Shown here: positions 160 through 61,023 of the stretch, piece after piece
How the letters are laid out: every line of letters starts with the position of its first letter
Numbering within the stretch: position 1 is the stretch's first letter
NCBI GenBank assembly: GCA_000388065.2
Contig: KB932201.1
DNA from: Fonticula alba ATCC 38817
Lineage: Eukaryota > Protista > Nucleariida
Strand: one strand, 5' to 3'
DNA length: 64,000 nt
Position numbers and translations under genes: made by a program
The notes under the pieces: generated by a model
Databases searched by the model: none
Seen by the model: only the letters and a program-made list of their open reading frames with translations
Told to the model about the DNA's origin: nothing

Positions 160-3100
160 TCACTGTAGAGTTGCCGAGGCGGATGGAGGAACAATGCGCG
201 GAGAGTGGCGCCGAGAGCGCCGAGACCCACCGCCGCCAGATGAGGGGGCATGGGCCTGATGATGGCCATTGTTGCCGCCACCGCCACCACTGTTGCCGTG
301 GTGATGATGGTGGTGATGGTGGTGATGACCGCTGCTGCTGCCGCCGCCGCCGCCGCCCATTGAAGCTTGGCCACCGCCGCGGCCAGAGCCACGACCATTG
401 CCGGAGGAGGATCCCGACGACTGGCCGCCATTGCGACGGTCCGACCCGCTGCCAACATTGCCGTTGCTGCTGCCGCCGCCGCCGCCGCCACTGCCGCCAC
501 CGCCACTGCCGCCACTGGACATCGAGGGCGCATACCCGCCCGAGGGATGGTGGTGGTGATGATGAAAGCCCCCGCCGTTGATGCCGACGCCGGCATTGCC
601 AAGGGCAGCGTACTGTGGCTGCTGTGAGAAGGGCGACGCGCCGCCGGAATTCGGATGCATGGGCGACACCTGGCCGCCAACATAATGCCCATGGTGTTGC
701 GGAGGATGGTGAGGGTGGTGAAGGTGCTGTGCCGTCGAGGGAGGAGGCGGAGGCGCGCCCGCCATGGAGGCGCCCTGCTGCACATAATGGTGGCTGCCAA
801 AGGGCAACACACCGACAGGGGTCCCCCCGGCTGCCTGATATGGGCTGGGCATTCCTCCAGCCGCCGGATGGTGATGGCCATACGCCATGCCACCAGCACC
901 TCCAGCGCCAGCGCCAGCGCCGGCACCCGCCAGAAGGTGCAGCCGGGCAGCATCACTTAAATCCATTGCCGAAGGTGACATCTGCTGCGGATGATGGTAG
1001 TGCTGCTGTTGCTGCTGCTGCTGCGCGAGACCGGTGGCCTGTTTGGGATGGTGGTGTTCCATGCTCGGGGCCATGGGGCCGGGTGCCGTTCCGACATGTG
1101 CAAGACCATGGTGCATCCCGGACAGAGAAGGTGGGCCGCCATCTCCGGGCATTTGAGACGAGGCTGAGATGTAGTATGGGTGCTGCTGATGGTGGTGTTG
1201 GAGGTGATGGTACGAGGATAGCATATGGTGTGACGGGCCTCCATTGGAGGAAGAGGCGTGCAGCTGGTGTGGATGGTGGACTGTGGGCGAATTGCTGCCG
1301 CCGCCACCGCCATTAGATGAAGACAATATCGCGGACATGGCATATGCCCCGGCAGTTGGGGCACCGGAATGATGATGCAATTGTTGCTGACCCGTTGACA
1401 TGGCCATCGACCCATGGTGGTATGACTGCGTCGGTGAGGCAAGGTGATGGTACGGCTGCTGGGCGGCTTGCTGTGGCATATGGTGATAAGCCGGCGAAGG
1501 GGGCGCCGTCCCTGGGTGGGACATGTGATGCTGCGCGTGCGGGGAGTGGGGAAGGTGCGGATGGAAGGAGCCACTGCCGGCAGCCTTCAACACCGCCTCC
1601 GTGGCGTCCCCGCCGACCGATCGGGCAGCTGGCATATCGGAGGACGCCTCATGTGCGGAACTCGTGGCAAAGGTGCCTCCATTCAAGGGGTGAGGGGTGT
1701 AGGCTGAGCGACCGCCTCCATGGGTGTTGCTGCTGCTGCTGCTGCCGCCATTGCCGGTGGAAGCAGCGACACTCGAACCACTGCGGTTGACAAGTGACAC
1801 GTTGCCGGCTGTGTGGCCGCTACTGCTGGGCTTCTTTTGGCGATGGCCAGCTGCACCGGCATTGGAGACAGAGGCAGGCGGCATGGCGGCAGTTGCGGCG
1901 GTGCCAGCAGCACCAGCGGCAGTCGTGCGAGCGGCCGATGCGACACTCGCAACAGTGGCGGTGGTCCCGGTCGAGGGGGATGTCTGGTCGGCGCCGGAGA
2001 TCACCTCCGGGCGCTTGGTTGGCTGGTCAACTGTCGCTGCGCCAGGGGGGTCCGTGGTGACATTCGAGCTCGACGGATTGGCGACGATCCCCGCGGTGCC
2101 TGACGGAACAGCCGGACCACCGACACCGGACGGCGTGGAGGTGGGGGAGGTGGGCCGCGAGGCGGCAGTGGCAGCGGCGGCCGAGCCACTGGCGGCGGCA
2201 CCAGTACTCCCGGGGGCAGTCGACGCCGAGGACACCAGCAACGACAGGGGACCGCCGCCAACAAGCACCGACCCGCGGAAGCCGGTGACCTTGGTGGCCT
2301 GTGGGCCCTTGGGGCCGACAAGGCGCGTATACTCCACCGGCTCACCATCCGCCAGGGTGTTGTGCCCGGACAGGGTCAGACCACAAATGGCCGTGTGGTG
2401 GACAAAGAGGTCCGGCTCGCTGGGAAGCAGAACTGGATCCAGATCCGAGGGGCTGAGGACCAGTCCTTTGCTGGCGGCCAGCGCAAGTACCTCTTCAGAG
2501 GAGGGGACTATGCATGGGAAGATTACCACGTCAGCGAAAGTAAAAGTGGGTAGGGCGAGAGAGAGGGAGAGAGGGAGAGAGGGAGAGAGAGGAAGAGGGA
2601 GAGCGAAGGATTGGGAGATGGAAGAGAGATGAAAATGGAGAGGATAGAAGTGGGCAAAGGTATACGCACCGGAGGGGGAAGGCGAGGCGGCGCTGTCCTC
2701 GGCGGGTGACTCGTCGGCTGACGATGTGGCCGTTGCCGGGGCGGTAGCAGCGTTTCCGGAGGAAATGAGCGATGCCACGGCGGCCAGCGCGGCCGAAGCC
2801 GCCGATCCGGAGGAGGTTGTTGTAGCCAGGACCGCTGCGATCGAGGCCGGAGAGAACCCCTCGCTCGGGATGTCGGAAGTAGCGTCCCCAAGCCCGGGGG
2901 TGGTGGTGCTGCTGTCCGCGGCCAAAGACGAGGTGGCCAAGATGCGAGCAGCCGTGTGGGCCAACTCAAGGCGACGCTCCAGCTGCTCAAGTGTCAGAGG
3001 CACAATGAAGCCATAGCCCCGGGAGAGGTTGAAGAACTTCACCAGCCCGACACGACGATTGTCGCCCTTGGCCACAACATAGGAAGGCTCATTGAAGCTG

Positions 3101-6100
3101 GGCAGCATGTGGCCAGCCGTGATGACACGCTCGAGGAGAGCCTGTGCCGCGGCCGTGGTGGTGATGTCGGTCGAGGTGGCACCGGCGGCGACGGAGCCGG
3201 AGGTGGCACAGGCGTCGGCGGTGATGAGGACAGTGGCACCGGCGGCAACAGGGCCATTGTCATCATCGCCCAGGCCGCCTCCGGAGGCCTTCGGGGCACC
3301 CTCAGTATCACTGATGTCTGACGTGCTGAGGACCGGGGCTTCGAGAGCCTGGCCGACGGAATCGACGAGACTGCTTGCAGCCGTGCCAGCAGACCCGGCG
3401 ATCGTGGCCGCGGATCCCGGGGAAGAGGACAGCCCGGGAGAGGAGGCAATCGAGGAGGCAGTATCCTCGGCCTTGGCCTCCTCCGAGTTGGTCGCGTCCT
3501 GCTCCTGCTGCTCGTGGCCCTCCTCCTCGTCCTGGTCCTCTTCGTCAGCCTCCTCGAGGGTGGTCCACTCGGGCAATTGCTGACGACTACCAGGTCCAGC
3601 ACTGGCGCCAACACCAACGCGTCCCTGTCCCGAGCGCCAGCCCGAGAAAAGGACGTTCGGCTCGCTGGCTCGGCGGCCAGTTTGCCAGACAACATTCCGC
3701 ATGAGCTTATGCATCTGGACTTCATGATGCTGGGCCGCGTGTGCTTCGTTCAAGTCCGCCGCAAAGGAGTCCGACAGGGGAGACGGGTCATCATGGTGAC
3801 CGCTGGCCGGGGGCGAATGCTCCGGCGGCGGGGTCATTCCGGGACCGCTGTCGGCCGGTGGCGACGGCTGGACATCGGCCGCGGCCGGCGAAGGGCTGGG
3901 CGAGGCGGAGATGGATGATGTGCCGCCAGTGACGACGCTGGCATCCGCGCCGGGGGCCGGCCGACGCTTGACTTGCACACTGTCATAGTGCTGGCCCTCG
4001 TTCAGGGAACAGAGGTAGAGGCAATGCGGGTGGTTGCCCGAGGTGAGGATGATCGGCGTGCGCGGACCGACGTAGGTGACGATGTCGCGGCTGAACCGGG
4101 GGGCACATTGTTGATGGTCAGACAATCGAAGGGGGAAGGGGATGTGGCAGCGGTGGCAGATGACACACCTGTAGAGTTCGGAGATGATGTCCAGCTCAAT
4201 CTGCGTGGTGTGAGGGACGCGATTTTGGGCAAGCTGCTCGATGAAGGTATCCAGGAGGAGGCGCGCGTCGATGGGGCTCGGGCTGCCCTTCGAGGAGGGG
4301 GTCTCCTCGGTCTGGGCATCCGGCTCTTCGGCTGGGAGGTCAGCCAGCTTGTCGGCCAAAAGGCGCACATACGTGTCAGCCTGCTCACGAAGGTGGCTGA
4401 TGACACTGGCCTGGATCTGGTCAACCGGGATGTCAAGCTGGGGTTTTTTTTTGGGAGCCGGAGGAGGGGAAGAGGGATGGATGAGTAGGTCAGGAGGAGC
4501 ACAGGCAAGGCGAGGAAGCAACTACACCGGAAAGGGAAGCATGGGCGCGAGTGCAGATACAACTTACCTGAGCCGATACGGCACGATACTGGACAGGGGG
4601 AGGGGGAAAGAAGGGGCAGGAGGCACAAAGAGCAAGGGGAATTGAGGGCGGGTTAGGCGGCAACATATACACACTGGAAGTGCTGATGGATCTCTGGACA
4701 GCGCGCGTGACAGGAGAGGAGGAAGAGAGAGAGAGAGAGAGAGGAGGGGGGGGGGAGTAGCGGAACGCACAAGAGACCCGGGGCCGAAGGGGATGCGCAG
4801 GCGCTCAAGGGCCTGCTGCGAGAGGAAGTTGTCCAGCTCGGTCAGCTGTGCACGCACTGCCTCACTGGCCACCGCATCGAAATACTGGTTGCCATCGGCA
4901 TCGGCGGTGGGGGTGGAGGTGCCGCTGCCGCTGCCGCTGCCGGCCGGGGAGGACGAGCCGTGGCCAGGCGCCAGGACGTCCTCGTTTTTGGAAAGAGCAC
5001 CAGCGGCTGTGGGGAGGAGGGCCATCGCCGCCGGGGCTGCACTGCCTCCATCGGCCGCCAGGGGCGATGGAGGGGTGGCCGGCCGAGAGATGGACATTGA
5101 CGAGGTCAATGGGCTGCTTTGTGAGGGGGGATGCTGCTGCTGTTGGCCGGCGGTGCCGGCCCCGAGCCGAGCCAGGGTGGCCGGATCGGTAGCCGGAGCC
5201 GACATGTGCATGTGGTGATGCCCAAGTAGGTGGTGGTAATGCCCGCCAAGCGGATGGCCGGCATGGCCGCCATTGAGGGGGTGTGTCAGGTAGGGACCGC
5301 TCGGGCCGAACAGGTCATCTGTCGGATGGTGAGGATGGTGGGCATGGTGAAAGGCGAGCCCCGAAGGCCCGGGAACCGTGCTGGCCGAGGGGGGTGGCAC
5401 CCCGAGCGAGGAGAAGATGTATGAGCTAGGGCCGGCGCCTGACAGGAAGGGCGGCCCACCTGGGGAAAGACCACCGGCAAGGGGATGGTCCCCGGCATTC
5501 GGGGGACTCAGCGCCAGGCCGGCCGCATGGAAGGTGCTTTGGGCGCCGCCGGAAAGGGATGGCCGACGGCCGCCACCGCCGCCGCCGCTAAACATGGACA
5601 GCTGCGTGGGCAGCGCGGAGTTTGGGCCACCGGTGAAGGGGTCGGAGTTGGCGGCGGCCGCCGCGGCCAGGGACAGACTGCCGGAACGCGCGCGAAAAGC
5701 CGGCGTCGGTGAGGAGGAGGCCATGGGGATGGCCGCGGTGCGAGAGCCGCTGCGACTGCGGGGCCGGCTGGAGGAGCCGGCTCCACCGCCGGAGGGACCG
5801 CCGCCGCTGCCGCCGCTGCCGCCGCCACTGTTGCCGGTGCCGCCCGGCCCGGTGCCATGGCCAACGGAGGCGGACATCAATGGCGCGCGCATCATCCGCT
5901 GGTTGCTGATGCCGGAGGGGCCGGCGCCGGAAAAGCTGGCCCGCCGAGCCGACGGGAAAACCAAATTCCCCGAGGAGAAGGACATGCCGCCGGCACCGGC
6001 CTGCCCGGGGCCCGGGAGCGATGGGCCGCCACCAGGGCCGCCATACCCGTGATGGTGTGGATGGGGAGGGTGCGGATGCTGTGCCGTCGGTGGCATCTGC

Positions 6101-6360
6101 TGCGGCGGTTGCTGCTGCTGCTGCTGCTGCTGCTGCGAAGGATGAAGGTGAGCGCTGTTGGGGCCGCCTGGCGTGCCGCTCAGGCCCAGATGCCCACCAG
6201 GGCCGGGGTAGTGGAGGCTGCCATTGCCCGGGAGGCCGGGCTGCTGCTGGGTCGGGTTGAAGCCCGAGGGGTGGATTGGCGGGACGAAGCTACTCGGCGG
6301 CGGGGAGGGCGTGTACAGCGGGAAGGGCGGGAGGAAGGCCGAGGGGGAGGGCATCGACAT
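160..6360 (-). CDS. OTU-like (OTUD4/otu-type, catalytic Cys->Ser) + cold-shock domain protein with long low-complexity N- and C-terminal regions
   Basis: Manual splicing: exons 6360-4771, 4588-4568 (21-nt microexon, YRAVSAQ), 4437-4169, 4090-2670, 2507-160. All introns are GT-AG and keep frame. Spliced product reads LDNFLSQQALERLRIPFGPGSLYRAVSAQLDIPVDQIQASVISHLREQ...QIELDIISELYSRDIVTY...LCSLNEGQHYDSV (OTU), then GLVKFFNLSRGYGFI...DLFVHHTAI...DGEPVEY...GPKGPQATKVTG (CSD). Start and final-exon boundaries are less certain. Confidence 0.8.
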
Positions 6361-7862
6361 GGTGTCGGCTGCCTTCGAAGGAGGAAGAAGAGGTGGAAAG
6401 AGCCAGGGATGTCGGGGGGGGGGGAGGGGGGAGGGAAGGGAGAGAGCGAGACGGGGAAGGATCGCACGCGCGCACGCTGACTGACCAGGCCGGGGCCAAT
6501 CTAGACGGCCGTGCTGCTGCCAGAGAAGAGGGGGGGTGTCAACCTTGCGTGGGCCTGTGGGGCTTCGTGTGAGTGGGACGACGGTCCAGGCGGGAGGAGG
6601 AGAAGGAGGAGGAGAGCGAGGAGGAGAGCGAGGAGGAGAGCGAGGAGGAGGGAGGGTGTCTGGGGCACGCGTACTAGACGCGAGCGGTGCTCCGAGGGCC
6701 GCGGGAGACGAGCGGCGAGTACGCCGAGCCGCCAGGGACAGTTGGGCGGAGCGAGGGGAAAGGGGGAGGAGGCGAGATCTCGGGTATGTGGTGGTACGGA
6801 AGGATGGGGAGGAGGAGGGGGGGCTGCAAGGGAGCAATGGGCGGGGGGAGGGAGGAAAGGAGGCGCAAGGGGAGGGAGGGAGGGAGGAAGGGAAACAGGC
6901 GGGAAGCACTCGTCCATCAGGGCAGGTAGCAGGCGCATGCGGCGGAGCGGCCACTCGGCTGAGTCAGGGACTTGCTGACGGGGCGGGCGACGATGAGGCC
7001 GCGCAGACTAGCCGGCGACAATCCTCGCTGGGCGTATCCACGCCTCGGCCAGTTGGCGGGCGGGCGGGCGGGCGGGCGGGCGGGCGGGCGGGCGGGCGNN
7101 NNNNNNNNNNNNNNNNNNNNNNNNNNNNNNNNNNNNNNNNNNNNNNNNNNNNNNNNNNNNNNNNNNNNNNNNNNNNNCCCCCGTCACAGGCGGGCCGTAA
7201 GAGTGGCATCTGCGCGCCGGTTATGGGGGACGTGGCGGGGGCGAGGCCGGGGAGGGGGGGGGGGGCCAAGTTGGATGGGCCGGACGGCGGCCCCGGTAGT
7301 GGGGGCAACGGCGGCGCGGGACGGAGCACCCCCGGCAGGGGGCGATCCGCGTCTTGACACGGAAGCGCCGGAGCCGGCCGCCAGGACACGCATGGGACGT
7401 CGGTCCGGGGCAGACCGGCGCTCAACCGCGATCGTAGCATCCCCTGGCCGCCCCCGGCCCGGCGCCCGGCCCGGCGGAAGGGACACCCCCGCTTGCCCCT
7501 CGCTCTTTCCCCGGAGAAGGGGGCAAGGCGGGCCCCGGGGCCCGAGGGGAGCGCCGCAGAGGACCGGTCGACTCGGGGGACTGCGCGACCCGAGAACAGG
7601 GGGCGCCGGAGCGAGGGGCGCCCGGGCCGCCATTATGCCGGACACTCCCTCGGGATGCCCTCGAGCACCGCCAGGGGGCGGGGGGGTGGGCGTTTCCCAG
7701 CGCCGAGTCTGGGGGGGGGGGGGGCGAGCTGTGGGCATCTCCATTACCCGGGCCTTCGTGGGCTTGGCCCTCCCCAAGTGGTGCTGTTTGCCTGAGGTCC
7801 CACCGCCAGGCCACGGGCCGGGGCAGATGGGAAAGAGCTACGCACACGCGCAAGCACCCACC

Positions 7863-16200: not shown

Positions 16201-17310
16201 TCAGCTGGGGGCTGTGGGCATCGGTATTGAGCATCAGCAGGGCAAAGGCCAGGATGAAGGCCGTGTCTGTGGGGCGTAGCGACGACAGGGGGAAGGCGGG
16301 AGAGGGGAGGGAGGGGGAGGCGGAGCAGGTAGACGGTCAGCCAGCCAGCCAGCCAGCCGGGAAATGAGGGAGGGGAGGGGGTGGCGGGCTGAAGGTGCGA
16401 CCAGGGGCCGCTGTGTGGAGGGCAGCAGGGGAGAGGGTGGCACTGGCGCACCGGAGAGCAAGAAAACCCCAGGGTTTTGCTGGCAATAGGCCTCGGAGAA
16501 GGACTCCAGGATTCGGGAGATTGCTTGGGCCTCGAGACCGGTCACCGTGAAGTTGGCCGATGTCAGGAACTTGCTGTGGTGCACATTGCGGAGCAGGAGC
16601 GCCGGGGGGCGGGGGNNNNNNNNNNNNNNNNNNNNNNNNNNNNNNNNNNNNNNNNNNNNNNNNGGATGGCAGTGGGGGACGGGCAGCCAGTGAGCTGGCA
16701 TGGCCAGTTTGTGGGAGACAGCAAGCGTGTTGACGTGTGCATGTGTGTCCAAATGTTTAAAGATGGAAATACATATATATAATAGACGTGCGAGGGGGAG
16801 GAGGAGAACGCACCGAAAGGCTGCCTCCAAATTCAGGCCCTGCATGGGAAAGTGCATGCAGAAAGCCTCCCGGACCCGGTTGGAGTGGGTGTCCCGGCCG
16901 GCGATGTAGCCGCCAACACGGTGCCGGTCGAGAGCCGGCTCGCGAAGGAGAAAGCGCGCAATGGCCTCGATCATGGGCCCGGGGAGCTCCTCGAAGTCCA
17001 GCTCCCCGGGAGCAGCAGCCAGCAGGGAGGCCATCTTGTCGGCATCAGCAGCGGAGGCCAATGCGAAGAAGCCATGGCGAATGAGGAGCTCGATGCCCTT
17101 TGTCCATGTGCATGAGTCCGGTTAGAGCGGGTGCAGTGACCGGGTATGCGCGGGGCGAGAGCGGTGATGATGGAGGTGGCCGAGACAGCAGCGGGCTCTT
17201 CCCGGGCGTACCAGCTTCGGCGAGAGATGGAAGACATAGATGTCGGCGTAGAAGAGAGACCGGACCTGCTTGGCGTCCGAGGCCTGGATGGTCGTCGAAG
17301 TGACGGTCAT
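13257..17310 (-). CDS. Sec7-domain Arf guanine-nucleotide exchange factor with a probable C-terminal PH-like region
   Basis: Sec7 motifs: GIELLIRHG, LDRHRVGGYIAG, FTVTGLEAQAISRILESFSEAYCQQNPGVF, TAFILAFALLMLNTDAHSPQL, LRKMYTSIVSNEI. Downstream YSIYLFNDSILL is PH-like. Multi-exon; the N-gap at about 16616-16663 lies in an intron; start codon tentative. Confidence 0.8.
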
Positions 17311-17939: not shown

Positions 17940-19489
17940 NNNNNNNNNNNNNNNNNNNNNNNNNNNNNNNNNNNNNNNNNNNNNNNNNNNNNNNNNNNNN
18001 NNNNNNNNNNNNNNNNNNNNNNNNNNNNNNGGCTGGCCCGAGGGGGGAAGGGGGGGGGGGGGGGCCTATGTCCTGCCCTTGTCTCTGCCCTCCGGTGCGT
18101 GGCCCCTGTGCACCCCTTGGGGCCCCGGGGCCAGCGGAGCTCCCCCGGTGCGAGGGACGGGGTGCGATCTTGCCTGATTGGTGGACCTGCGCCCGGGGTC
18201 CCACGGGCTGGGGGCGCCCCCGTCCCCGTCCCCCGGAATGTCGACGGACCCGAGGGAGGTCCTTCATAGGATGTGTCATTGAAAAGGCCGGCCCACAAGA
18301 GGGGCCATGTTGCGCCGACGTTCGGCCCCTGCCGGCGCCCCACTCTCTGCTCCCCCCCCCCCCCCCCCGGGGTGGGGGCGGCGGCGGCCTAGCTGGGCTT
18401 ACCCTATTCGACAAGATCGGAGCTGCGGCCAAACTCCGCGCGCCGCCCCGGGCGGCCCAGATGGCTAAAGGTCCGGCGGCAACCGTCAGGCGACGGCGCC
18501 AGGGGGGGGGGCGAGGCGCATGCCGTTGGAGCCGCATCTGGCGGGCTGGCGTGGCTCAGCGAGAGCCGGAGCATTTGAGCCGGGGGCCGGGGGATGTGCG
18601 GGTGCTCCTCCCAATGTTGTTTTTCCGGCGGTGACACCTACGCTGGCCACTTCGCCGGCAGCGCCCGGGGGACTTTTTTTTTTTCCCGAGCCGCGCTTTT
18701 TTCTCCCTCCAGCCGGGCCACACAATCCGGCACTTCAAGTGCGGAGGGAGCGCACGCGCATTCCAGAGCCCGGCCGCTCCCCAACCACCCGATCTTGGTC
18801 GGGCTGGGCCTGGCCACACCGCCGGCCCCCCTCGGCCTGTCCCTCCGTTGAGCGTCGGAGGTCTCGGCAAAAGGCCCGACCGGCGTGTCTCTTGGGGGAT
18901 CCTGCTCCCCCGCGTCCCGCGCCCGGCGCCCCGGTCCTCTGCCTCCCTGCGCTTGAAGATAGAGACGGCCGAGGTCCCCCCGCCCGCCCTTTGTATGCCC
19001 TCCTTCGGTGGACAAGTGCTCCCCCCTCCCCCAGAGACCCAGCAATTGGCACCGCGGGGCCCGCGGTGCCCCTGTGCGCGTCAATCGCCGTGAAATGCTC
19101 GATTCATGCAATCGTTGGCAGGTGGCATATCCGACGAATTCCTCCGCCCGCGCCCGCCCGTGCTCCCCCCATCCTGGAATCATGCCGGCTGACACGCCCG
19201 GCCGCCGCGCCGCAGGTTTTCTTCTTTCGGCATCACTCCAGCCAGCCGAGAAACGGCCCCCAGTAACCCCGGCCCGTGGTGCGTAAGTATGTGTCCCACA
19301 CACGGCGGGACATTGGTGCTCGGGGCCTCGCAGGCTCACAGATGACCGAGAAAGCTGGTGTGGATGTGGATGCGCGGAGGGAGGAGGATACACACACACG
19401 AAGAGAGAGAAAGCGAGAGAGAGAGAGAGAGAGATGGAGAGAGAGGCTGCGGACACACATGGCTTGTATTCAACCGATGAGTCACCCCG

Positions 19490-32200: not shown

Positions 32201-33095
32201 GGAGTCCAGGGACAGAGGGTTGTGGCTCATGTCGAGGTACTGCGCGACACACCGCGGGGATCCCACCAAGATGAAGCGGGGGGCGAGGGGGGGGGGGGNN
32301 NNNNNNNNNNNNNNNNNNNNNNNNNNNNNNNNNNNNNNNNNNNGGGCAGACGCACCTTCAAATTTTCGCAATGCTGGATAATGTCCGACAGGGGCTTTAG
32401 GCAGGAGGTTTCATTCTCGGAAATGTCCAGATACTTGAGACTCCGAGCGCAGCCCTTGGAGAAGTCCTCTGTCCAGAGGGGGTGCGAGCCGGGGCGCGAG
32501 ATCCCAGGAAGGAGGGAGGGAAGGGAAGGTCAGGGGAGGGGGGGGGGGATAAGCGAAGGCCCGCCAAGCCTGATGGACGAGCCGAAGCAGAAGCACCACA
32601 GAAGGATGGGAGGGGAGAGGGAAGAAGAAAAGAGCCCATCCAAGAAAAAAAAGCCAGCTCACGCACCGACGACATATTCCAGCTTCAGGCGGGTGCGAGC
32701 AATGTCCAGGCGCTCGAGGTTGACCGCGGCACGGAGGACCGGCGACAGGGCCGACAGCACGTAGCGGTCCAGGCGAATGGACCGAAGCTCCAGTCGGGTC
32801 AGATTGGCCGGCTGCAGGAGCAGCAACGATCGACACAGGGCGGCCATTCCCCGACCGCGGGGATTGGTCACCGACTCGGAGATGGCCAGCCCCCGGAGGC
32901 TGATGCCGCATGTGAGCAGGTAGTCCGCCAGGGAGGTGAGCGCTCGGTCGCAGAGGAGGTTGCCGCTGAGATCCAGCGAGTGGAGCTCGCTGGCCGTGGG
33001 ACCATCTGCCGGGGAGACCCGCGCAGATGTGGAGCTTGGCGAGAAGAAAGTCATCGAGGAGGAGGGAGACATCCCGACGGCCGCGGCGACACCGC

Positions 33096-46942: not shown

Positions 46943-48004
46943 TGTGCCATCTGCCCATGTCTCCACCTCCGCTGGAGGCCCTGAGTCCCCCTCCCCGTCT
47001 CCATGTCGAGCACGCCGCCTCCCTCCGAGCTGACACGCGTACACACATGCACGCATATGTGAGCATGCCGAGGAGGCTGCTGGACATGCCTGTGTGTGAA
47101 TGTGCGAATGCGTGTGTGTGCGCGCACATGCGCGTGCGTGTTTGTTCGTCTGCGCACATGCGTGTGCGCACACACGCACACATATACATATGCACGCCGC
47201 CGCGCCCATGGCCGCCTCGACGCCTGGGAAAAACCGCTCCCATCACGGTTCTGGCTTGTCTAACTGTGCCCTACAAATAAAGAAGAACCCCCATGGAGAG
47301 TAGCCAGCCTGGTGTCAAAGCGTTGGCGCCTCAGCGCGTGACCGCTCCGATCGGGCGCCTTCATATGNNNNNNNNNNNNNNNNNNNNNNNNNNNNNNNNN
47401 NNNNNNNNNNNNNNNNNNNNNNNNNNNNNNNNNNNNNNNNNNNNNNNNNGGGGGGGGGGTGAGGACGAGCTGTGGGACTGGTCAACCATGTCCGCCAATG
47501 GCCCGAATATGTCCGAGCCATGGGCCGCCAGTCGGATCGCGAGTGTTCTTTCACAAGGCCCCGAGGCAGGGACAGGGGGGGAGGGGGGCTAGAATCGGGG
47601 GCGACCCCCGTGCGGGGATGGGATCTCCCGTGGCTCCATGACTCGTTCAAAGGCGGATCAAGGCCGCGCGGATGTGGGCCAGTCCTGATGGAGGACTAAC
47701 TGCTCAGCCCGTTCCCTCTCTGGTTCCCCCCCCCCGCCCCCGCCCCCGCCCCCCCCCCCCCCCCCCCCCCCCCCCCGCCCCCCCCCCCCCCCCCCCCGCC
47801 CCGGCCCCCTCCTCAGGCGCGCATCTGCGGGCACTGGGCAAGATCGCTTCCTCGGCCGGCCCACCCAAAGGGAACTCTGGAGGCGCGCGCTCGCCGGCCC
47901 CGTCCGTAGGCCAATGCTCCCTCCTCTCCCCCACCCTCTCCCCCGAACCGTCGACCCTTCTTTACCTGTCCTCGCACAGCTCCCTTTGCCTCTCCTCTTG
48001 TGCT

Positions 48005-52797: not shown

Positions 52798-53825
52798 GGT
52801 GTGTTGCCTGCGCGTGTCTGTGCATGGTCATGGAGGGGGGAGGGGGAGGTGGCCCCGAGGGGGAGAAGGAGAGGGCGGGAGAAGGAGGCGCGAGGATGGG
52901 GAAATGTCAGTGCCAGGCCAAGCGAGGAGGAGCGGCGAGGACAAATCCCCGAGCAAGCGAGGACGGGGGAGAGACAATCCCAAGGGAATGCACGAGGCAG
53001 ACGCACTGTCAAGCGGAGGGGAGGACAGGGGGGGAAGAGCTGAGATAAAGCTNNNNNNNNNNGGGGAGGACAGGGGGGGAAGAGCTGAGATAAAGCTCTT
53101 TGGGGGGGTGGGCGGGGGGGGGCACACGGGGGGTGGAGTTCTCTCCAAGCGTCCGGGAGTGGGCTGGCGGACTTCTAGGTAAAGTGCAGCTGGGGAGGGG
53201 AGCCGGGCGTCACGGTGAAGATGAGAGCAGGCCCCAGCCGGGGCACTGGCGAAGGGGGACATCCCTGAAATAGGTGCGCGCTCATGGTCGCATGCAGTAG
53301 GGCAGCGAAGGAGGGAGGCACGGCGGATGACACCCCGGAGCCGGGCCCGGGAGAGGCGAGGCCTCGGGGGACGGGGGGAACGCGCGCATGAATGTAGGCC
53401 AGGGGGGGGGGGAGGGTATGTATGTGTGCGTGCATACGCGTGTGTGCGCTCAGACGGGGACACATACACACACACACACACACGCGCGCGCGCACATGCA
53501 CGTACACAGCCGGCGCGCGAAAGCGAAAATTGCACGATGTCTGTGCGTGGGCAGGGGTGGGCAATCAGAGCAAAAAAGATGCGCAAAAAAAGGGGGACAG
53601 GGAAGGAAACCCGCCAAGCGGTGCGAGCGGGATCCGGGAACCTCGGCAATTGGGCATTTGCTCTCGGGGGGGCGGTCTTAATAGCGCTCACGATTGGCCA
53701 CCGGGGCGCCCTCACCGGCAGCAGCTGCCCTGCCGGCGCGCCGGCTGTCCGACAACATTCTGGACCCGGCCCCGGCCCCGGTGGCTTCGTCTCCTGGCGG
53801 CGCCACCCCGCCCACCGAGAATGGC

Positions 53826-53908: not shown

Positions 53909-54954
53909 ACCAGGAGAAGCCGGGGTGCCCCCAAGGCCGTGCNNNNNNNNNNCGCCTTGACCAGGAGAAGCCGGGGTGCCCCCAAGGCCGTGCACTCGGC
54001 CGCACGCTACATCCTCGCACCCAGGCGCCACGAGGGCGCCGAACAATCTGCCTACCAATAGGACCATCTGTCGCTGGCCGCGGCCAGTAGCACCAACGTC
54101 ATTTCACGCGCGGGGATCTCCGGGGCTATCCCAATCCCCGGTGGTCTTGCACCAAGACAAGTGGGGACAGGGAGCGTGCGCCCGGCGGGGGCCGGGGCGT
54201 GCAGCGCGTAAAGCGGGTGGAGGCGGCGCGCCGCGTGCTCCGCCCCCCCCGGCAGCCGAGACCGCCCCCCCCCCCCCCCGGGGGGGCAAGGGCGGCGGGG
54301 CGCACATGGGCCCCGAAATAGAAAAAAAACCCTTCCTGGGCCAGCCCCACCCTGCTCCCGGGCGCGCGCGCCCATGCACGCGCAAGTCACCGGGTCCGCC
54401 TGGGCCCCTCTGGCTCGGCCCGACCTTACTCCCCCCCTACGGCCCCTATACAGAACAGGGGGGACAAGTATGCCCAAGGAAGATGGCACATTTCACAACA
54501 ATGCACCACACCCGCCGAAGGGCGTGCTTCCCGCATCATGCCCGGAGAGTGAGTCCACGCTTTCCCCTCTGCCTCCGTGCTACGGGCAAACGACGCAGCT
54601 GACCTGGCCACACTCGACTGCCTGAGTGTCCCGTCGCACCTCGGCCGCTCGGCTCGGGGCCGGCGGATCACAGACCGCCGACAAACCCGGTGAGCACGCG
54701 CGGGGCGGCCGGGTGGCAGTTATATTCTTGAATTCCAGCTCTGTGCGCTTTGAAGAACGACCCTCCAGCAGGACTCCACGCCATGCGGGGAGGGCGCTCC
54801 ATGGCCACGCGCCGGCGTCTTGCCGAGCGCGACCTGCCGCCGCACCAGCCGAGGTGCCGGAGGAAAGGCCGGAGGACCGAGGGGCGGCTGCAGAAGAACT
54901 GCCACCAGCATTGGCGTCTTGACGAAGGAATCATGCTGTTGTTTCACACCCACG

Positions 54955-59027: not shown

Positions 59028-59162
59028 NNNNNNNNNNNNNNNNNNNNNNNNNNNNNNNNNNNNNNNNNNNNNNNNNNNNNNNNNNNNNNNNNNNNNNNNN
59101 NNNNNNNNNNNNNNNNNNNNNNNNNNNNNNNNNNNNNNNNNNNNNNNNNNNNNNNNNNNNNN

Positions 59163-61023
59163 NCCAAGGTCGCTGCTGCCGCCAAGGCGGCCGCCGCTCC
59201 CGAGCTCAAGAAGCGCAAGGCCCCCACCTCGGCTTCTGCCGCCTCGGCCGCCGCCGGCAAGGTCGCCAAGAAGCCCGCCTCGGCCGCCGCCAACAAGGTG
59301 GTCAACCGCCAGAGCGCCCCCCCGAAGGCCGCCAAGAAGTCGGCCCCTGTGAAGAAGGCCCTGGCCGCGGCCAAGGCTCTCGGCGATGCGGTCGAGTCCG
59401 AGGAGGAGGCTGATGACGCCGCCAACCCCGCCTTCATCTCCCTTGGCTCGGATGATGAGGAGCCCGCCTCCATGGGCGAGGGCTCCGACTCGGACGATGA
59501 GGACGACGAGCCGGCCCCTGCCTTCGTTGTGCGTGGAATAGCCGGCCCCATTGCTTTCTCTCACGATGCCGCCCTCCTGCCTGCATGCAACACAGCAACA
59601 ACGCGCACAAGTGCATATACCCACGACCCGGCCCCTTTCTCACTCATGCCCATCCATCCCCCTCCCCTCCCCCCTCTCTCCGCCTCCCCACCAATGGCAC
59701 CTGTCTCGCCGTTCTCTTGTGGCCCTCACGCCCGGCGTAGGATGATGACGACTCCGGTAGCGAGGCCGAGGAGGAGGCCGACGGCGCGACCGACAGCAAG
59801 ACTCGCTTCGACATGGACTTCGAGATGGGTGTCGGTGATGATGCTGAGTCGCGCGCGCGCGCCGAGAAGCTGGCCCTCCTGCGGTCGCGCATCAACGAGA
59901 TGCTGGACACTCGCGCCAAGAAGGATGGCGCCAAGGAGGGCGACGCCCAGGCCACCGGCGCCACTGTCCGCCCGGACCGCGGTGTCGTCTACCTGTCTCG
60001 CATCCCGCATGGCTTCTATGAGCCCCAGATGTTCGGCTTTTTCTCCCAGTTTGGCACTGTCACTCGCATCCGTCTGTCGCGGAATCCCCGCGTGCGTCGG
60101 CGCACCGCACTGGCGGGCTAATCCCTGCGCGGATTTCATGCTTTCCTCTTCCTTCTCCCACCTCTCGTCGCATGTCGCTCCTCCCAGCACGGAGTCTCCT
60201 TCCTCTCTTTTTCTCTCCCTCCCCCCTCTGACCCCTCATTCCACACTCCCTCTGCTTCCCCCCGGCATGCTGTCACACCCTCTTGCATTCCCCCTCCCCC
60301 CCCCCTTCCGCAGACTGGCAAGTCCCGCCACTACGCCTGGATTGAGTTCGAGGTTCCCGAGGTTGCTCGCATTGTGGCCGATTCCATGCATTTCTACCTG
60401 CTCGGTGGTCGTCTGCTCCGTGGTATGTTGCCGACCGCCGCGTGCCCTTTCCTCCTTTCCTGCGCCTCCTCCTCTCTAATGCCTTTCATAATGTCGCATG
60501 CTGCCTTCCTTCCCCTCCGCTCTCCGACTCCCTCCCCACCAGCCTTCTTCGTGGAGAAGGAGAAGCTCCACCGGAACACCTTCCGCGGCGCTGTCCGCTC
60601 GGCCGAGGCGGTCAAGCTTCGCCGTGGCGGTGCCTCCTCTCTGATCGCCCCCCGCCGCAAGGATTCCATCAACCAGCGCAAGGCCGATGCCGAGGTGGCT
60701 GTCTCGTCGGCCGAGGCCCGCCAGCGCCGTCTGGACCGCGTGGTTGAGCGCGAGAACAAGCGCCTGGCCAAGCTTGCCGCTGCCGGGGTTGACTTCACCT
60801 TCAGCGCTCTGGTACGTTCAACTAAGGGGCAGTGGCAAGGAGTAACTGCTGCATTTTGGTCCTGCCTCCTTTGCGTTTGCCCGGTGGATTACCAACACCT
60901 TGAACCCCTCCCCCTCCCCCTTGGGTCTTCCTGCATTTACACATGCGCCTGTGCATGCGCGCGCACGCTCAACAGGATACTTTCAAGACCCAGACTGCCT
61001 CGCGCACCACCTTCGACGAGTAA
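59163..61023 (+). CDS. NIFK: Nucleolar RRM protein NIFK/Nop15 (5' end hidden in assembly gap)
   Basis: RGVVYLSRIPHGFYEPQMFGFFSQFGTVTRIRLSRNPR|TGKSRHYAWIEFEVPEVARIVADSMHFYLLGGRLL. Lys/Ala-rich then acidic N-terminus. Last exon DTFKTQTASRTTFDE-stop. Confidence 0.9.

Follow-up and report, generated by a model that had tools for sequence, protein, structure and literature searches.

A transcribed gene of Fonticula alba combines a divergent, serine-type OTU-like domain with a split cold-shock domain

Human OTUD4, an OTU-domain protein, binds RNA and is found in stress granules and neuronal RNA granules (PMC6602300), and it also has non-catalytic scaffold roles (PMC12012553). The founding OTU protein is Drosophila Otu, which carries a serine, S40, in its active site. 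Its reported in vitro activity depends on each of D37, S40, and H143; whether it is a deubiquitinase at all is disputed, and its germline function does not need S40 (PMC12012553). Pseudo-deubiquitinases commonly serve as scaffolds or allosteric partners, and several former members of this class were later shown to be active (PMC10919355). Here, we describe a gene of Fonticula alba ATCC 38817 whose predicted product carries an OTU-like domain with a serine at the catalytic position and, downstream of it, a cold-shock domain (CSD). It lies on the minus strand at 160..6360 of a 64,000-nucleotide (nt) stretch of contig KB932201.1 (assembly GCA_000388065.2), hereafter the window; all features discussed below are on the same strand.

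We read this locus, at a probability of roughly 54%, as a single nuclear gene for a largely disordered protein of 1882 amino acids (aa) that serves as an RNA-binding scaffold, with a divergent OTU domain that is non-catalytic or very weakly catalytic and with a CSD split in two.

One transcribed gene across two open reading frames

The open reading frame (ORF) list of the window gave two minus-strand ORFs at this position, 160..4521 and 4564..6954, both rich in low-complexity sequence. An initial annotation, made from the sequence alone, had proposed that canonical splicing unites them into one protein, and this was borne out: four GT-AG introns join the two ORFs into one open frame of 5646 nt, with 1882 codons, a stop at 160-162, and no internal stop in the spliced translation. 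All four introns follow the consensus GT(G/A)(C/A/T)GT at the 5' end and (C/T)AG at the 3' end. The same annotation called the gene hidden, which is apt only with respect to a prokaryote-style ORF track.

The model has five exons. Exon A (4771..6360, aa 1-530) encodes a disordered N-terminus rich in G, P, S, and A (aa 1-495), the first OTU helix, and a degenerate Cys loop, G526-P-G-S529. It is followed by the frame-shifting intron 1 (4589..4770, 182 nt, GTGCGT..CAG) and by exon B, a microexon of 21 nt (4568..4588) that encodes Y-R-A-V-S-A-Q (aa 531-537). Intron 2 (4438..4567, 130 nt, GTAAGT..CAG) precedes exon C (4169..4437, aa 538-627 with the last codon split), which contributes the OTU helical lobe, a 29-aa acidic, Pro- and Ser-containing insert, and the helix Q-I-E-L-D-I-I-S-E-L-Y. 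Intron 3 (4091..4168, 78 nt) went unseen in the ORF track because it is in frame and free of stops. Exon D (2670..4090, aa 627-1101) encodes the OTU beta-sheet and His loop, a 300-aa linker rich in A, S, and G, the CSD's N-terminal half, and the greater part of an insert within that domain. Intron 4 (2508..2669, 162 nt, GTGCGT..TAG) is also in frame, and exon E (160..2507) completes the coding region.

We screened four small sequencing runs from 2012, presumed to be of RNA. Sampled words of 2300-4900 were present in these runs at 55-69%, which fits a spliced copy. Contigs of two public runs, X1 and X2, were placed on 400-6399, and all four predicted joints were found in both: 4588/4771 (182 nt), 4437/4568 (130 nt), 4090/4169 (78 nt), and 2507/2670 (162 nt). 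Both joints that flank the microexon are thus seen twice. The joint ends read CT..AC on the plus strand, that is, GT..AG on the strand of the gene. Junction reads had been proposed in the initial annotation as a check on the four introns, and RNA contigs of two runs support every one of them. A single contig of 645 nt (X2 record 13) crosses exons D, C, B, and A (3943-4090, 4169-4437, the microexon, and 4771 onward), and the two ORFs therefore lie on one mRNA. Overlapping RNA contigs tile 519-6093 with zero letters differing from the genome, and depth drops in the intron bins. Two raw-read runs from 2026 that bear the species label (X12 and X17) placed no reads here and carry no weight for or against the model. 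This is one real, spliced, transcribed gene.

A fifth joint, 5587/5749, has non-canonical CT..CC ends, is seen in one run (side 20), and was set aside as an artefact of repeats: it falls in a GGC/GCC-rich repeat, is contradicted by a colinear contig over 5520-5939, and probably reflects collapse by the assembler. The predicted start is the first in-frame ATG, at 6360; this 5' end is putative because the RNA contigs end at 6093. An intron at 6093 was ruled out, as the break sits beside a CAG repeat. An assembly gap (N run 7099-7177) lies about 740 nt upstream of the predicted start and could conceal an upstream exon or a promoter element. Seven more N runs in the window are likewise assembly gaps (16616-16663, 17940-18030, 32299-32343, 47368-47449, 53053-53062, 53943-53952, and 59028-59163). 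GC content is 60-74% across the first 10 kb.

The OTU-like domain and its active site

The OTU-like domain spans aa 506-668 (3967..4845) and is interrupted by introns 1-3. We compared spliced residues 496-680 with OTU profiles built from viral and metagenomic OTU proteins with Pfam-verified members. A degenerate DNA pattern for the Cys-loop motif yielded 33 viral contigs. Ten ORFs from these contigs were checked against Pfam; seven scored above the OTU cutoff, one scored below it, and one gave only a weak otubain (Peptidase_C65) match. One viral OTU query added four further proteins, and a 10-sequence OTU alignment, A1, led to 80 metagenomic loci. The A1 profile is a bona fide OTU profile because it matches the structures of OTUD3, OTUD5, and OTUD1 (PDB 4BOU, 3TMP, and 4BOP; E 1e-31 to 1e-21). 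Two of the viral-contig OTU ORFs carry other modules, namely MORN repeats (L032:192-1622:+) and PUB and UBA-like domains (L018:3448-5076:-).

Comparison of the spliced residues with a 74-sequence OTU alignment in hhalign gave a probability of 96.6% (E 6.2e-10); the 131 aligned columns are colinear and extend from the helix that precedes the Cys loop to past the His loop. The best of 100 shuffles reached 9.1%, and the reversed sequence 0.0-0.2%. Two smaller OTU alignments gave 93%. A hidden Markov model (HMM) of the 74 sequences, run with hmmsearch, assigned the domain 20.0 bits, with E 4.8e-5 in a set of 2002 targets. The top-scoring shuffle of 2000 reached 10.0 bits, none of the window's 652 six-frame ORFs rose above 2.4 bits, and the reversed sequence received no score. 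Protein language-model features of a fragment agreed with this assignment: 60 of the 100 nearest Atlas clusters were OTU families (score 0.92, 177 shared features). OTU homology of aa 496-680 is established at the level of sequence profiles, as the initial annotation had supposed from motifs compared by eye.

The hhalign probability depended on the form of the query. It was 1.7-18% for the unspliced fragment, 65-93% once intron 3 was removed, and 93-96.6% when exons A and B were added. This climb with each splice speaks for the splice model as well as for the domain call. In a separate run against the 10-sequence alignment, the unspliced fragment reached just 3.8%, because the intron was retained and the N-terminal helix was missing. 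In-frame introns and a 21-nt microexon can evidently conceal a domain from ORF-based and single-sequence searches alike.

Single-sequence searches retrieved no OTU relative. A phmmer search for such relatives in the PDB returned only a chance LIM match (E 1.4), and word-indexed homologue searches with the OTU part of the downstream ORF, including a 246-aa query at E up to 10, returned nothing. When the exon C-D fragment was searched exhaustively with phmmer in a set of 1.84 billion representatives, the sole match (E 3.6e-4) was a metagenomic protein of 371 aa (P0001). This match was discarded as spurious; P0001 is built of about six tandem repeats of 59 aa, nearly identical to one another, and only a short stretch before the His loop was matched. 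A MAFFT alignment (A2), meant to add depth for structure prediction, was set aside because it misplaced the N-terminus and the intron-encoded stretch and because a prediction based on it would have been circular.

Motifs reported by the initial annotation were largely recovered. Its start string of 26 residues, which it had aligned by eye to an OTUD4-type sequence (L-D-N-F-L-S-Q-Q-A-L-E-R-L-R-I-P-F-G-P-G-S-L-Y-R-A-V), is the exact splice product at aa 509-534. The later OTU motifs that it listed are present with slightly different spacing; the actual strings are QIELDIISELYSRD and LCSLNEGQHYD.

In the profile alignments, G526-P-G-S529 falls on the family motif D-G-N-C, and the following L-Y-R-A-V falls on L-F-R-A-V. 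The microexon encodes part of the helix that normally opens with the catalytic Cys, and it aligns to L-F-R-A-v-s-d-q of the OTU profiles. At the position of that Cys, the codon map places TCT (4774..4776), encoding Ser529, with the RNA contigs in agreement with the genome. The Cys-loop Asp is replaced by Gly526, so the D-G-x-C motif with its catalytic Cys, which characterizes the OTU family (PF02338, MEROPS C85), is absent. The entire protein has four cysteines (650, 654, 921, and 1142), all of them outside the Cys loop. G-Q-H661-Y-D663 forms a canonical His loop, in which His661-Tyr-Asp663 (3982..3990) aligns to the invariant H-Y-(D/N) of the profiles. Where the family has W-G-G-x-l-E-l-x-A-l-S, this protein has H-T-T-Q-I-E-L-D-I-I-S-E-L-Y.

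Judged from these substitutions, loss of OTU catalytic activity is likely. The initial annotation named the protein a pseudo-deubiquitinase. The replacement of the catalytic Cys by Ser and of the Cys-loop Asp by Gly fits that name; inactivity itself stays at the level of inference, and the serine of Drosophila Otu had been overlooked.

The cold-shock domain, the disordered regions, and their pairing with OTU

The CSD that the initial annotation placed downstream of the OTU domain was recognized by Pfam (PF00313) above the gathering threshold of 27 bits, with a score of 37.6 bits (E 2e-9) divided over two stretches. The first covers the N-terminal half (beta1-beta2, aa 973-997, 2980..3054), has an RNP1-like G-Y-G-F-I, and matches residues 4-20 of the bacterial Csp structure 5xv9. 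The second covers the C-terminal half (beta3-beta5, aa 1132-1177, 2278..2415), has an RNP2-like F-V-H-H, and matches PF00313 positions 24-62 and 5xv9 residues 25-64. G-Y-G-F-I-V and L-F-V-H-H align to G-F-G-F-I-T and L-F-V-H-H of that Csp. Among solved structures, bacterial Csp proteins match best, with YBX and Lin28 next. The two halves are nearer to bacterial Csp (E 3e-6, with about 60% of residues identical to 5xv9 in the aligned parts) than to Y-box and Lin28 proteins (E 2e-3 and 0.03).

Between the halves lies an insert of 134 aa (aa 998-1131) rich in A, S, L, and T, in the beta2-beta3 loop; its DNA, 2416..2979, also contains intron 4. RNA contigs follow the genome without a break over 2728-3687, which makes the insert exonic. 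A large intron excising it was considered and rejected, as there is no suitable donor and the RNA contigs are colinear there. At the beta2-beta3 loop, an insert of this size is topologically tolerable for the putative barrel.

Long disordered flanks on both domains, as expected from the low-complexity regions of the initial annotation, make up most of the remaining protein. Stretches rich in G, S, A, P, and H comprise about 495 residues before the OTU domain, 300 between the domains, and 702 after the CSD. The C-terminal region (aa 1181-1882, 163..2268) is 18% G, 15% S, 13% A, and 11% H and contains His and Gln runs. Within it is a short G-R-G-S-G-R-G-G-G element (373-396). Other ORFs of the window show similar composition, and low complexity may be partly a genome-wide trait.

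The pairing of OTU and CSD appears to be undescribed. Full-text literature searches with OTU domain, cold-shock domain, and deubiquitinase returned only unrelated papers, and no literature linking Fonticula alba with OTU was found. In the ESM Atlas, a 716-aa query from OTU to CSD and a CSD query found, among large clusters, OTU-only and CSD-only clusters and no mixed one. None of the 113 OTU-bearing ORFs from the viral and metagenomic loci had a CSD motif. The statement of the initial annotation that this is not a recognized architecture agrees with these three sources. The observation comes from one gene in one poorly tractable organism.

Readings of function and comparison with known systems

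In the scaffold reading that we favour, the protein would be anchored to single-stranded RNA or to ribonucleoprotein assemblies by its CSD, its short RG-rich element, and its long disordered regions. The serine-type OTU domain would act as a ubiquitin- or protein-binding module, non-catalytic or at best very weak, rather than as an efficient isopeptidase, because the nucleophile Cys and the Cys-loop Asp are both lost. By analogy, the working mode may resemble that of the Otu/OTUD4 group, in which an OTU domain is combined with RNA association, low-complexity regions, and catalysis-independent roles. The role in granules and ubiquitin sensing suggested in the initial annotation is speculation.

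The strongest competitor holds that the OTU domain is a relic in decay that plays no part in ubiquitin biology and that the protein works as a CSD-type RNA-binding protein with disordered tails. We consider this unlikely, though a serious alternative. Divergence is so high that no single-sequence search retrieves an OTU relative, the Cys loop is fully degenerate, and a 29-aa low-complexity insert interrupts the helical lobe. Against a relic stand the hydrophobic core pattern and His loop, still recognizable across the 131 aligned columns, and the precise splicing of a microexon and three introns that keeps the domain in frame; neither is proof of selection.

Less probable still is an active deubiquitinase or esterase with a serine nucleophile, of the type of Drosophila Otu, that uses Ser529, His661, and Asp663, perhaps turned on once the protein has become concentrated on RNA by way of the CSD and the disordered regions. 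A full Ser-His-Asp set and the canonical H-Y-D loop are retained, and Drosophila Otu has Ser in the same position, where S40A abolishes its reported in vitro activity (PMC12012553). However, the Cys loop of the Fonticula protein departs from D-G-N-C at all four residues, including the Asp that Otu needs, and Otu's own role as a deubiquitinase is debated, with S40 dispensable in the germline (PMC12012553). The case for a working serine site is weakened further by bench practice with this family. Laboratory inactivation of OTU enzymes is usually done by exactly this Cys-to-Ser exchange. In favour of an active domain, Otu activity reportedly depends on coalescence of its low-complexity domain, in the words of the title of a 2019 paper by Ji et al. 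A bolder idea, to which we give little credence, is that a lineage near the base of the fungal branch independently built, outside animals, an Otu/OTUD4-like combination of OTU domain, small barrel that binds nucleic acid or another ligand, and low-complexity tails, complete with Otu's Ser, as a conditional hydrolase or ubiquitin sensor engaged only when the CSD and the disordered regions concentrate it on RNA.

Several observations weigh against the scaffold reading. Loss of activity is not proven, because the serine-type Otu of Drosophila has been reported active. The OTU profiles are home-made, and the hypothesis was picked by eye from the same motifs. The Pfam OTU model had no match on the unspliced pieces and ORFs, and alignment-free AlphaFold2 on a fragment with intron 3 retained and the Cys loop missing gave a predicted local distance difference test (pLDDT) score of 38. 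Orthologues were absent from all searched protein collections, which leaves nothing against which to judge whether Ser529, the insert, and the fusion are conserved. As low complexity is common across the window, the flanks need not be specialized for condensates.

The empty Pfam and phmmer searches on unspliced pieces, the Atlas recognition score of 2082, under the reliability mark of 2300, and the 3.8% of the unspliced fragment in hhalign speak for a chance match of short motifs in a compositionally biased protein. We regard chance as very improbable, given that the spliced domain reaches E 6e-10 in hhalign and 20 bits with the HMM, is colinear from the first helix to the His loop, and has clean shuffled, reversed, and same-window controls. 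Two separate genes, or joints that are assembly artefacts, can practically be dismissed: coverage by RNA is sparse, at a word depth of 0.5-10, that the runs are RNA is a presumption, and no single contig spans the whole gene, but four independent GT-AG joints recur in two runs at exactly frame-preserving positions, one contig connects both ORFs, and overlapping contigs cover nearly all of the coding region.

Should the architecture be functional, it would provide a second, independent link of OTU domains to RNA-protein assemblies, beside animal Otu and OTUD4, and a second natural serine-type OTU active site. It would also allow a simple comparative test of the question debated for Drosophila Otu, namely whether an OTU domain with a serine acts as an enzyme or as a binding module.

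Each half of the architecture can be set beside known families. The CSD resembles CspA/CspB, Y-box, and Lin28 proteins in scoring above the Pfam cutoff and in its RNP1-like and RNP2-like motifs; unlike theirs, it is broken by 134 aa in the beta2-beta3 loop and set in an OTU protein of 1882 aa. The OTU domain is recognized by a profile of the OTUD3, OTUD5, and OTUD1 type (PDB 4BOU, 3TMP, and 4BOP), with the helix and the W-G-G-x-x-E-l-x-A-l-S and H-Y-(D/N) positions colinear, but identity is about 20%, the Cys loop has become G-P-G-S, W-G-G has become H-T-T, and the helical lobe has gained its 29-aa insert. With pseudo-deubiquitinases, the protein shares the missing canonical catalytic residue; it differs from them in that a potential Ser-His-Asp triad is left.

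Among RNA-associated OTU proteins, human OTUD4 is similar in having an OTU domain followed by long disordered regions. OTUD4, however, is an active enzyme with the catalytic Cys in place, and it lacks a CSD. The OTUD4-like label given by the initial annotation is at most a candidate assignment. The Tudor domain that defines the OTUD4, Otu, and ALG13 subfamily is absent from the Fonticula protein; a Pfam search of both ORFs at E up to 1 found no Tudor domain, and the CSD was the sole match. Compared with Drosophila Otu, the Fonticula protein has Gly in place of the Cys-loop Asp (D37 in Otu), a CSD in place of the downstream Tudor domain, and an extra disordered N-terminus of about 500 aa, and it is more than twice as long. 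The two proteins are nevertheless alike in placing the OTU domain toward the N-terminus, in having Ser for the catalytic Cys with the His kept, and in carrying a downstream small beta-barrel ligand-binding domain followed by a C-terminal low-complexity region; Otu is, in addition, linked to RNA-binding proteins (PMC12012553, PMC12263153).

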